Below are positions 44,298 through 55,396 of a stretch of DNA of 64,000 nucleotides, piece by piece (the stretch's first letter is position 1; each line of letters begins with the position of its first letter). The translations under genes were made by a program, and so were the position numbers. The DNA is from Dimorphilus gyrociliatus (lineage: Eukaryota > Animalia > Annelida): positions 868,001-932,000 of the forward strand of contig CAJFCJ010000014.1 of assembly GCA_904063045.1 (NCBI GenBank), in the 5' to 3' direction. The notes under the pieces were generated by a model that did not search any database, was not told where the DNA came from, and was given only the letters and a program-made list of their open reading frames with translations.

Positions 44298-45110
44298 TTA
44301 AATTGAAGTGGAACGCTTAGATTGATTAGATAAAGTAGAAAAGTTAAGTTTTAAAAATTTTATTGATGATTTACCAAAAGACCTGAAGACTCTAATAAAT
44401 GCCATTAAATCTATTTTCATATCAAATTCATTTGTGTATAAATGTATAGGATATTCTAATAGCTTCTTTGAATGTTTAAAATCCAAATTTATACCCAATT
44501 TAAGTAATAAAGCATCCAATTTGCATAGTAAACTTTTTTCGTCAAATTGAAGAAATAGTTGGAAATTCGTTAGTAATTCTTTATCTTTAATAAGCTGATT
44601 ACTAGATCTAAGTTGTTGAATAAAGAATACAGCAAATGAAAGAGATTTTTTAATATTCTTTAAACTACTTCCAACATCTGCAGTATAGTTTTTCAAATTG
44701 ATGTACTTTTTCAATTCAGCAATTTGTTTTCCTACTTGAACAGAAGGTAAGTCTTTTATTCCTTTCTATTAGGAAAATTAGTAATATATATATAGAATAT
44801 ATATGAAAAAATATGAATAATATCTATCAACCTCCTTCCTCAGTTGATAGGCCAAATGATATGATTCGAATAAATTTCTCTGAAAATTTTTCAAAAAGTA
44901 TACAAGACTTAATTTTGTATTTTGTACAGTTTTCCTATCCAATTTACAATGATTAACCAAATTAAAGTTTAATTTAGCTTGTTTAGCTTTTAAAGGAACA
45001 GTTTCAACGAAACTAACAAAGGATAAAGCTGTAAAAGAGATTATTAATATTAATAAATAATATAAATACTTTTATTTCATCATACCTAATAGAATATTCA
45101 ATTTATTCAT
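44298..45110 (-). CDS. Secreted orphan protein A (229 aa), putative long-chain four-helix cytokine; paralogue of 54740-55396
   Basis: Exons 45086-45110, 44832-45028 and 44298-44765; introns of 57 and 66 nt (GT-AG) keep the frame. Translation: MNKLNILLALSFVSFVETVPLKAKQAKLNFNLVNHC...QLRKEKGIKDLPSVQ...LKNIKKSLSFAVFFIQQL...LLCKLD...FIRVFRSFGKSSIKFL...*. Signal peptide, 2 Cys, upstream TATAAATA at 45181-45188 (minus strand). The intron 2 donor is GTTGAT, which is weaker than consensus. Confidence 0.8.
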
Positions 45111-45604
45111 GATTGAATATCTTATTTTTGGTCGAGATATGAATTGTTTCAATTCAAAGCTAGCTCTGAAATTCTCTTAGTATTTATATATTTTGTCATC
45201 ATGGGTAATTGATGTATTTATCAACTGTTATCTTTTTGAATGGAAATGTGGAAAATACATTATTTTTTCAACGTTTCTTAATAAACATAGACATAAAATA
45301 TGAAATTATAACCATCTTGTTACGATGACGATACAAATTCCTTTCAGAAAGTTTATATCATATAATTCAAAGTGCTTAAGAAGTTAATAAAAGTTCAAGA
45401 GGTTTTCGGCTATTAGTAATCATAATACTCTAATTTCTTTTTCTTCAATTGATATACAAATAAACAGCAGAAAGATAAAGAAATAATAAATGCTAATTTA
45501 TAGGAAAAGTACAATTTATTCATAAAATCATTTGGCTTTTTTTTTTAATAAATGAATTGTTTTTTCGCTTATAAGCGCCATCTAGTTAAACGACGCCATT
45601 TTTC

Positions 45605-47271
45605 ATGTTGTTCGAGAATGAATTGTCGTCTAATGACGAATTATCTATAAATCTCCAAAGCGAATGCTTAAGATGGCAAAGATTAAAGGGAGAATTAAAT
45701 GATGCGGAATTCCTATCATTTCTCTTGAACATGTAAAAGACAAAAAATTAAGACATATTTATAAAAATTGCATATAACTACTGATTAAAAACTTTATGAC
45801 TGTAAAAATAAATTAATAAAACACAAAAGTTAAATAGACAGACGTAAAGAATATGATATGATCACTAAGAAATATCTAATAATTAACAGGTACGAAACTT
45901 TCAAGAAGGACACAACAATCATTGATATAAATGAAGATATGGGAGGAAATATGTCGAAATCAATAGAAAAACATTCAAGAAAACCAGTAATAAAAAAAAA
46001 TTTAAGGTATTTTCCTATCAAAATAGAATAATTTGCTGATAATTCAACAATTTCATATTTAATATAGAGACATTTATCAAAAGTCAGAACTTTCTCATAA
46101 TGAATTGGATATCTCTTCTTACAGCGGAAAATTACAGAAAATATTGGATACAAAAAAGACTAGTATGTTTACAATACGTATAATTGTCCTTGAAGTATAT
46201 TAACTTCCTTTTTTCTCTCATTACCAACCTCTTATAGGCATTCATAATATATCAGTATTTCGATGCGATCTCTGTAGTTTTGCCAATCTCAATAAATCTG
46301 AATTTGAGAAACATTTACAAGAATCAAATCATCATTTAACAAGCGTTGAAGACTTTAATTGTAGAAATTTTAAAGTCACGTGTAATATTTGTAATATTGG
46401 ATGTTTTAATGAGAGAACACTTGTTGCCCATAAACGTAGAAAACACGAATCTTTGGAATTTAGATGTTCTTACGAAGATTGTAAATTCGTCTCTAAGCAT
46501 AAAGATTCGTTAAAAGCTCACTTGAACTTTCAACACGGGGATAAGAATAAATATGTTTGCTCGTTCTGTGCAAAAGGATTTAAAAGACCAGATCATCTGA
46601 GATTGCACGAAAAAACTCATGAACTTAGGGACTCATCGGAAGAAGACAACCGCACCGAAGGAACTCGGACACAGCAAACTAAATGTAATATATGTGACGC
46701 AATCTGTAAATCTGAACTGCATAGAATTATACATGAGAAATCTATGCATTCTCTTATGCCGTTCCAAGGCTATTACGTTTGTCCAAAATATCCAGCTTGT
46801 CAATTTAAAAGTGAAATGGAATCGTCAGTCGTTTCACACGCTAGAATCAAGTGCTCTAGAAGAGAAGGGGTGCTGAAATTTAAATGTAGATATTGTTCGA
46901 AATTGTGCAGTAGCTATAGCGCAAGATTCTCTCACGAAAAACGGCATTTGAGAAAAAAAGATCACAAATGCGATTTATGTCTGAGAGCTTTCCTAACCAC
47001 TACAGAGCTAACTAGTCACAAGAAGAGTGTTCATAGTGATGTTAGACCTATACCGTGTAAAATTTGCAATCAGACTTTTAAGAAAAGATTCAATCTTAGA
47101 CGTCACATGCTAAAGCATACTGGCGAGAAGCCTCATAAGTGCATAATTTGTTCGGTTGCCTATGCCGACTCAACTACTTTAAAGAAGCATTGGGAAAAAG
47201 AACATAATATTGTCGACGTCAGCTGTCTTAAAGATAAAGAAGAGGTCTTAACAATTTCTCAAGACTTTTAG
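45605..47271 (+). CDS. C2H2 zinc-finger protein, about 10 fingers
   Basis: Four spliced exons keep the frame. The last exon carries repeated C-x2/4-C...H-x3/5-H fingers, including a canonical HTGEKPHKC linker. Confidence 0.9.
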
Positions 47272-47490
47272 GAAGAAAATTGTTTTCGTTCTCGTTTAGT
47301 GCTGTCCTTGTTTTATTATTTTGCTACATTTAATATATAATCCGTTAAATCAATTTATTATTAATCCAGCTGATAGGTTATTTGTTTTTTCTTGATAAGT
47401 GATCTGAGATAGGGTGACGCCATCTATTCATAAAATAGCTTCTCAGGTGGCGTTCGAATCGGACGTCGAGTTAGACGATGCTCACGAAGA

Positions 47491-47685
47491 ATGTCATCTA
47501 GAGCTCACAAGAAGTGGGTCCGTTTTGCGACTGTATTGGCTTACGTATTATCAGTGTCTCTAGCAGCAATAGTGCTCGCCATCTACTACAGCCTTGTTTG
47601 GGATCCAAATATTACCATTCCAACAACAGTACAGCCTACCCTTGAGCCGGATTTGACCACTAGTTACCCATTGAATAAAGAATGA
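47491..47685 (+). CDS. INAFM: InaF-motif single-pass membrane microprotein (TRP-channel regulator family)
   Basis: [31 protein letters not shown] matches the InaF motif. Confidence 0.92.
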
Positions 47686-53316: not shown

Positions 53317-54676
53317 CTTTTTGTGGAAAGATAATTTAATAGTGTAATATTGTTTTTTTTTTCCTTTATTTTTGTAGTTTTTTTGTCAAAAAAAAGAGAT
53401 AAAAAAGAACATACTTCATATTATTCTCTTCGTCTCATAAGTCATTCATAATTAAATATTAAGTGTCTTAATATATGTATATACATTTTGAGATTTTTTT
53501 TCTCGTGTCTTCCTCGTTTGCTTCAACAATGTATTAATGTATTTAAGACAAGTCAAACAAAGAATTAAATTTGTTAAAAACAGAACCAAAGCACACTTTA
53601 CCACACGATAAGAGAGATATAAATACTGAAAAATACTGTATAACAATAGAATTATATACATTTACTATTTATAAGAGCGTAGTATAATTTCAACAGCAAT
53701 AGACACAACATGTAGATTATATATCAAGTATATAGAACAGGTACGAAATATGTACAGTATGTTCTATATGCTGTATTTGTTATATATAGCAGATTGGTAC
53801 AACTTCATAATCGAACTTACTTAATCAAAAAGGAAGACAAAAGTGTAAAAGTTCTCTTTGGAAGAAAATTAATCGGCTCTATCGATCCGATAAAGAGATA
53901 GCAGTCCGTCTCTCTCTGTCCCTTTCCTACCTCACCCTTCACCTCACTCTTCCTATCGAATCGTTTTTTATTATTTTCTATAAATATATCATACATGTTG
54001 TTCTTTAATAAAAAATGTTTTCAACACATTCTTGAATTATCAATGAAAACGAAAGTACTAAACATTAAAATGGTATTACATCCCCGAAACGTTTTTAGGA
54101 AGTATTTTTTGGCCGTAAAAGAGGCCTTATGACTTGAGAAAAAAACGTAGCTTTTCATAGCAAGACAATCTTAACAATTCCTGATCAAATATTCCTTTAT
54201 GAAGTATACAAAATTTTTCAGACTCTGTTCCTACTTTCAGTATCAAATTAAAAGAAAAGATGTTAATGAATAAAATATTATTATCCATCTTATTACTTTT
54301 GAAATTATACTTTCAAACAATTAAGGACTTAGAAAAAGTTATGTATGCTATTTGAGGTATAAAGTACACAGTGTTAATTAATGTTCTTTCTCCATTGATT
54401 TAATTAAGAAAATGAAGGAAAAACTATGATTATTATTAATATTATTGAAAAATAATGTTGTTTCTATTCAATTAAGAAGTGAATTTGAAAAAACAAGTTA
54501 ATGTCTTTCATACATGAAAGAAAATGAATAGAATAATGATTTTGGCAATGAAAAAAGTACTTTTAAATTATTTCGCAAATTTAAATATTGTCAACTATTT
54601 ATAAAGGAATAACAACAACTGCAATCTTAAATAAATCTTAAGATTCTCCTTTGGAAATTTAAGTCTTAACTTTAAG

Positions 54677-54684
54677 TATAAAAG
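54677..54684 (+). promoter_or_regulatory. TATA box of secreted orphan B
   Basis: TATAAAAG ending about 55 bp upstream of ATG 54740. The sequence is AT-rich, so a chance match is possible. Confidence 0.45.
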
Positions 54685-54739
54685 ACAGCAACTATGAACA
54701 TGAATTTTATAATTCAAGTTTTTCTGAAAAGAGGAAAAG

Positions 54740-55396
54740 ATGAAATTTCAACAACTATCAATCCTTTGTGTCTTACTTTTTACTTTTGGTACAACTTTTG
54801 GCGAGAAAATTTCAATTAATTTATTGAATCCTTGCCAAAGTTCAAATTCAGAAGTTTCAACCAGGATGGCTCTTCCAATAAACGTCTACTATAATATGTT
54901 TCGCAACGTTCTATCGACTCAAGATCAAATTGCTCAAAATGTATTAAAGGCAATTGACAAATCTATATTTTCTATCGGATCGGCAAAAAAAGCTCTTGGT
55001 TCAGTTCAAGGCAATAAACTATCAAAGGACGAAACGAACATCAACCAAGGGCTTTCTAATTTAAGGAAATCATATGTATTGAATATCTACTATTTTGAGC
55101 AAACTCATCTTGGATTGAAAACTTTAAAAGATGATGAAATTGCTGGTCTTAGTAAATCATTTTCTGGTGTTGAATTGAAAACATGGGAATTTGGACTATG
55201 CATTCTTGATCAAATTACTCTGGCTAAAAACGCTCCAATTGATTATAACTTTGCAAGAGATATTCAAAATTCTGAGATACATAAGAGGACTCACTGGAAT
55301 GAAGTTCTAATTGACGGTTATATTGCTGGTTTCCTTTTTAGAGATTTGTCTTCCGCTGCTTTTAACTTCTTGGAGTACATGAAAAATCAAGGCTAA
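54740..55396 (+). CDS. Secreted orphan protein B (218 aa), putative long-chain four-helix cytokine; paralogue of 44298-45110
   Basis: Single-exon ORF with signal peptide MKFQQLSILCVLLFTFGTTFG, 2 Cys (NLLNPC, GLCILD) and four predicted amphipathic helices; AATAAA downstream near 55490. Confidence 0.88.
   Translation: MKFQQLSILCVLLFTFGTTFGEKISINLLNPCQSSNSEVSTRMALPINVYYNMFRNVLSTQDQIAQNVLKAIDKSIFSIGSAKKALGSVQGNKLSKDETNINQGLSNLRKSYVLNIYYFEQTHLGLKTLKDDEIAGLSKSFSGVELKTWEFGLCILDQITLAKNAPIDYNFARDIQNSEIHKRTHWNEVLIDGYIAGFLFRDLSSAAFNFLEYMKNQG

Follow-up and report, generated by a model that had tools for sequence, protein, structure and literature searches.

Two paralogous secreted proteins of the annelid Dimorphilus gyrociliatus with a predicted fold resembling that of IL-6-type cytokines

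A 64,000-nucleotide stretch of the 78-Mb assembly of Dimorphilus gyrociliatus (G000:C14:868001-932000, hereafter called the window, with positions counted from its first letter) carries two genes, designated A and B, which raise the question of whether annelids encode long-chain class-I helical cytokines. Among invertebrates, the only class-I helical cytokines established as ligands of the JAK/STAT pathway are the Unpaired proteins of Drosophila (Upd1-3), which bind the receptor Domeless; they evolve rapidly and are difficult to detect by sequence in animals other than insects (PMC13203501). Receptors resembling gp130 and Domeless have been reported in molluscs, and JAK and STAT are ancient, but a 2026 survey found IL-6-type ligands in vertebrates only and Upd in insects, and left open the ligand of the molluscan receptor (PMC13203501). 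No four-helix cytokine is described in the literature on annelids and molluscs that we searched, and JAK and cytokines go unmentioned in the D. gyrociliatus genome paper (PMC7854359). A first-pass annotation of the window had proposed that genes A and B encode diverged members of the IL-6/Unpaired group. Based largely on predicted structure, we likewise read the two proteins as a new and very strongly diverged addition to the long-chain class-I cytokines. With moderate confidence, we favor the view that they are paralogues from a fast-evolving secreted family whose fold is nearest to that of the IL-6/gp130 group (IL-11, CLCF1, CNTF, IL-6, LIF and OSM).

The relationship between the two proteins is evident from direct comparison. 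Their Smith-Waterman alignment scores 114, whereas 1000 shuffled versions of B give 36 +/- 6 (z = 12.8) and none of them reaches the true score; z is 13.4 when the signal peptides are removed. BLASTP likewise aligns them over 193 residues with 22% identity and an E value of 1.35e-7. The proposed homology is upheld by these values, and by this measure A and B are true paralogues. Our aligners also reproduce the pairs of matching motifs quoted in the first-pass annotation, except that they place DLPSVQ of A and ALGSVQ of B otherwise. Both proteins start with a hydrophobic, signal-like N-terminus in which small residues precede the probable cleavage site, and farther along neither sequence has a hydrophobic segment strong enough to span a membrane. 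By inspection, then, both appear to have the signal peptide that had been claimed for them, and both conform to the general design of a secreted cytokine of ~180-230 residues.

Gene A lies on the minus strand and comprises three exons. Exon 1 (45086..45110) holds the ATG and the first eight codons plus one nucleotide of the predicted signal peptide, and exon 2 (44832..45028) encodes the remainder of this peptide, an N-terminal NLxNxC segment that includes Cys36, and helix A (residues 46-74 in the structural model). Exon 3 (44298..44765) encodes the AB loop, which contains a short helix, as well as helices B and C (the latter carrying Cys155), the CD loop and helix D, and ends with the stop codon. 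The two introns, as read from the sequence, are 57 and 66 nucleotides long with GT..AG ends, and the three exons translate into 229 residues that match the deposited protein DgyrCDS9870 (CAD5121347.1) exactly. We aligned contigs from a public sequencing run of 2017 (X1) over positions 43000-47000 of the window, and these splice exactly at 45028/45086 and at 44765/44832, which removes both introns. Because contigs of this run also skip the GT..AG introns of neighboring genes, we conclude that the run is derived from RNA, and thus that the three-exon model is correct and that gene A is transcribed. Gene B (54740..55396, plus strand), which begins 10 kb from A, is a single uninterrupted open reading frame of 218 residues plus stop, with a predicted signal peptide at approximately residues 1-21; its mature form retains Cys32 and Cys154. 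The protein collection lists it among the proteins predicted from the D. gyrociliatus assembly.

A third member of the family exists in a related species. An exhaustive hidden Markov model search, in which a profile of A and B was run against 1.84 billion cluster representatives, returned the two queries and one additional protein (P0003, E 1e-5), which is a truncated gene call from two Logan contigs (runs ERR14224705/6). The full gene can be read from the DNA of one contig (L007:6370-6397 + 6460-7100) and encodes ~222 residues with a good signal peptide by reading and with the same NLxNxC and LCxxDxxxL motifs that are present in A and B. Its similarity to B is clear by tblastn (E 3e-19, 26% identity over 207 residues). 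The gene has a single phase 1 intron, located within the signal peptide after nine codons, and the first intron of A is also in phase 1 and occupies the matching place after eight codons. In B, the intron inside the signal peptide has been lost.

The genomic neighborhood of the relative is also shared. Contig L007 (43-8892) is collinear with positions 28847-34700 and 35045-36055 of the window, and the relative gene sits between these two blocks, with a TPR-repeat-like gene on one side and a Glyco_tran_28_C gene on the other. The corresponding gap in D. gyrociliatus (34700-35045) is empty, and the two genes A and B are located 10 and 20 kb beyond it, indicating a local move of the cytokine-like gene. 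In the genes that flank the relative, identity to the window is 63-86% across the longer in-frame tblastx segments. Given the shared neighborhood, the 26% identity of the relative indicates a family that keeps to one neighborhood but evolves far faster than its neighbors, and such fast divergence is usually the behavior of secreted ligands and immune proteins.

The columns that are invariant in A, B and the relative lie partly in the signal peptide and otherwise cluster around two cysteines (NLxNxC before helix A and LCxxDxxxL in helix C) and a single arginine in helix D. The first turn of helix D also carries an aromatic residue in each protein, which is Phe188 in A, Trp186 in B and a tryptophan in the relative. 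The annotation had stated that each protein contains exactly two cysteines. This holds for A (Cys36 and Cys155) and for mature B, but the B precursor has a third (Cys10) inside its predicted signal peptide.

The case for a cytokine fold is made by structure prediction. AlphaFold2 models of A and B were built from three sequences only. The model of A has long helices at residues 46-74, 105-133, 150-163 and 187-223; short helices also occur in the loop between the first two and in the loop between the last two. It thus exhibits, although at low confidence, the four long helices and the long AB and CD loops of the class. Known cytokine structures superimpose on it in sequence order over nearly the whole solved chain, which indicates that its helices run up-up-down-down rather than in the up-down-up-down order of ferritin; no full-length superposition with ferritin-like connectivity was found. 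The seven best structural matches of the A model are all gp130-family cytokines, with scores of 13.3 for viral IL-6, 13.1 for CNTF (147/150), 12.9 for IL-6, 12.7 for OSM and 12.3 for LIF. Placental lactogen (12.1), IL-27 p28 (11.6), growth hormone (10.3), leptin (10.1) and IL-23 p19 (9.9) score lower, and interferons, IL-12 p35, EPO and G-CSF rank below IL-23 p19.

A second and independent line of evidence comes from the ESM Atlas. For A and B each, all ten of the best named neighbor clusters by language-model features (score 0.93, 210/256 features) belong to Hormone_1, IL6, LIF_OSM, CNTF, IL11, GCSF or IL12, and among them is an uncharacterized mollusc cluster of 229-residue proteins. Uncharacterized arthropod clusters are likewise placed nearby. 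The Atlas has its own model of B (predicted local distance difference test, pLDDT, 0.71; predicted template modeling score, pTM, 0.75), which over 174 residues and in either direction matches a cardiotrophin-2-like cluster with a template modeling score of 0.65. Since two predictors each yield a cytokine fold for one paralogue and the language-model evidence agrees for both, we consider it likely that A and B adopt the long-chain class-I cytokine fold.

The D. gyrociliatus genome encodes intracellular components of the proposed pathway, namely STAT and a JAK-like kinase. A STAT_bind match of 143 bits lies at G000:C6:2194943-2195371, and a second, weak match of 32 bits at G000:C9:2046482-2046850, so that the worm may have two STAT genes. 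The JAK-like gene, at approximately G000:C7:1268480-1272290 (L013, L015), contains a pseudokinase-like domain (48 bits) followed by a strong tyrosine kinase domain (160 bits), both preceded by a FERM_F1 match that is weak at 20-22 bits. The Pfam models Jak1_Phl and FERM_F2 match nowhere in the genome, including this gene, but they match nothing in the control genomes either, and their silence thus carries little weight.

Three groups of FN3-domain genes were considered as receptors and set aside. The cluster at C19:926-944 kb is usherin-like, and the cluster at C6:981-1000 kb encodes IgCAMs. The interval C2:4478767-4495255 (L018, L019) contains genes for two FN3 proteins of cytoplasmic type, whose main open reading frames include neither a signal peptide nor a membrane segment. 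These last two genes are convergent paralogues, 33% identical over 1200 residues, each encoding more than 1200 residues of FN3 repeats, and one of them has a near-threshold Interfer-bind match.

By sequence, A and B are orphans. Word-indexed searches of 5.8 billion proteins, conducted with B, with exon 3 of A and with a three-sequence profile, recovered only the family itself. A six-frame search of the D. gyrociliatus genome revealed no further convincing paralogue, with only weak rows at E 0.24-0.45, and there is no additional copy within the window or on contigs L007 and L008. Thus the family, as judged from these searches, is so far known from dinophilid annelids only. Neither protein reaches the gathering score of the Pfam families IL6, LIF_OSM, CNTF, IL11 or Hormone_1. 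The first-pass annotation had also pointed to a resemblance between helix D of A and that of human IL-6, but we found no link to IL-6 or Unpaired at the level of sequence.

Several results weigh against the cytokine reading and must be set beside the structural evidence. Pfam assigned no family to exons 2 and 3 of A or to B at E values up to 10, and returned only unrelated families at chance level for the relative; a profile search of PDB sequences gave chance rows and no PDB chain; and among the 1.84 billion representatives the family is limited by sequence to two species. Both AlphaFold2 models are of low confidence (pLDDT 51 and pTM 0.58 for A; pLDDT 41.6 and pTM 0.45 for B). Foldseek found no significant row in the PDB for either one, its most probable rows for the A model being IL-6, CNTF, growth hormone and IL-11. 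The AlphaFold2 model of B has no clear structural match, the Atlas model of A resembles ferritin-like bundles and other bundles (template modeling score of 0.45 or less) but no cytokines, and an Atlas shape search with the AlphaFold2 model of A gave nothing useful. The annotated four-helix cytokine layout is reproduced by one model of each protein and by the language-model neighbors, but not by the other two models. On the receptor side, no match to IL6Ra-bind was found in the genome, although this too is a weak blank given that the control genomes yielded none, and the Lep_receptor_Ig match, of only 20 bits, is to a small Ig-domain protein.

An alternative reading is that A and B are secreted helical proteins peculiar to their lineage that do not act as cytokines, such as gland, egg-coat, seminal or antimicrobial proteins. 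A cytokine-like model would then be what predictors produce for any secreted protein of ~200 residues that has long loops and four long amphipathic helices. The orphan status of the family, the low-confidence and non-matching models and the empty receptor searches are all in keeping with this explanation, and the disparity between the relative and its flanking genes also suits reproductive or defense proteins. However, two different predictors arrive at the cytokine fold, each for one paralogue, with agreement from the language-model neighbors of both. Moreover, the matches follow the order of the sequence, extend over almost all of each solved cytokine and exceed those to all non-cytokine bundles, and the conserved cysteine pair and helix-D arginine suggest a defined and constrained fold. 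We therefore regard a non-cytokine role as rather unlikely, while noting that it is the alternative to which we give the most credence.

Other alternatives concern the type of helical protein that these genes encode. A and B could belong to the class-I superfamily and yet signal through a homodimeric receptor as endocrine factors like growth hormone, prolactin or leptin (Pfam Hormone_1, Leptin), instead of being inflammatory or developmental ligands in the manner of IL-6 and Unpaired. The A model scores lower against these hormones than against the gp130 family, which supplies its seven best matches, and the Atlas model of B resembles a cardiotrophin-2/CNTF-type cluster. The hormones show no sequence similarity to A and B, and their disulfides are at different positions. 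We judge this possibility improbable, even though the lead of the gp130 family is approximately 2-3 Z units, which is small for a model of such quality. It is more improbable still that the proteins are class-II (interferon/IL-10-like) cytokines or up-down-up-down bundles of the ferritin-like or apolipoprotein-like kind, and we attach very little credence to this idea. Matches of both sorts are weaker than every match to the IL-6 family, those to ferritins cover residues 102-220 only, and the sequences give no hint of a metal site and no Pfam Ferritin or Rubrerythrin signal.

Returning to the long-chain cytokine reading that we prefer, it is a reasonable inference that A and B serve as ligands of a Domeless/gp130-type receptor, and a mechanism of action can be proposed. 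Each precursor is predicted to begin with a signal peptide and the NLxNxC segment. Helices A and B would follow, separated by a long AB loop; a short link would lead from helix B to helix C, which contains the LCxxDxxxL motif, and a long CD loop from there to helix D. The conserved cysteines would form a disulfide between the N-terminal segment and helix C, a connection that is also made in LIF and OSM. The mature proteins would then be released and bind the cytokine-binding module of the receptor, which would gather the JAK-like kinase and lead to activation of STAT, both of which are encoded in the genome. By analogy, the helix-D arginine and the aromatic residue in the first turn of this helix would be the expected receptor contacts, and they may be counterparts of IL-6-family sites I and III, respectively.

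Even if this reading is correct, A and B would differ considerably from the ligands already known. In structural alignments they are only 6-12% identical to the IL-6/gp130 cytokines (Pfam IL6, LIF_OSM, CNTF, IL11), with no detectable sequence similarity, and unlike that family they are found only in dinophilid annelids. Their cysteine pattern also differs from that of IL-6 itself. They share with Upd1-3 a rapid evolution and a resistance to detection by sequence. However, the length of Upd proteins is roughly double, and any relationship to them would be at the level of the fold only: there is no solved Upd structure among the matches, and the A+B profile recovered no insect protein from the 1.84 billion representatives and hence no sequence homologue of Upd1-3.

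A candidate TATA box, TATATAAATA, lies on the minus strand at 45181..45190, 80 nucleotides upstream of the A start codon, and another, TATAAAAG, on the plus strand at 54677..54684, 63 nucleotides upstream of that of B. The first-pass annotation had used such boxes to distinguish the two genes from their neighbors. The motif is indeed present at both, and two of the three neighboring genes tested are without it, but a TATA-type motif occurs in that range at a random site with a chance of 0.098, and the distinction is thus weakly supported. A candidate polyadenylation signal (AATAAA, 55490..55495, plus strand) is also apparent from the sequence ~95 nucleotides past the B stop codon.

Upstream of gene A, one RNA-derived contig links exons 2 and 1 of this minus-strand gene to the 5' exons of a plus-strand C2H2 zinc-finger gene. 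The contig includes the stretch from 45086 to 45732 and continues to 47000, with zinc-finger gene introns at 45732/45890, 46004/46066 and 46162/46238. It seems that the A transcript meets and overlaps the zinc-finger transcript head to head, unless A has a long 5' leader. Between the two paralogues, positions 48000-50000 exhibit a strong strand asymmetry (GC skew -0.20, AT skew -0.155) over a region that covers two minus-strand open reading frames of 231 and 127 residues without a Pfam match. Downstream of B are genes for a carbon-nitrogen hydrolase (55973-56641, plus strand), a G-patch protein (57239-58771, plus strand) and a rhodopsin-family G protein-coupled receptor (58825-59715, minus strand), none of which has an evident link to cytokine signaling.

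If our reading is true, A and B are the first candidate IL-6-type ligands in worms and molluscs. A further step, which we offer only tentatively, is that they share an ancestral bilaterian gene lineage with the IL-6 family and Unpaired and are working ligands of annelid Domeless/gp130-like receptors. Were this the case, Spiralia would gain its first known JAK/STAT ligands, and the pairing of ligand with receptor, beyond JAK and STAT themselves, would date to the bilaterian ancestor. The family also illustrates how such ligands evade sequence searches, in that its only relative is 26% identical while the neighboring genes retain 63-86%. With two small and intact candidate ligands, of which A is transcribed, in a culturable worm whose genome is compact at 78 Mb, the question is now open to ordinary experiment.

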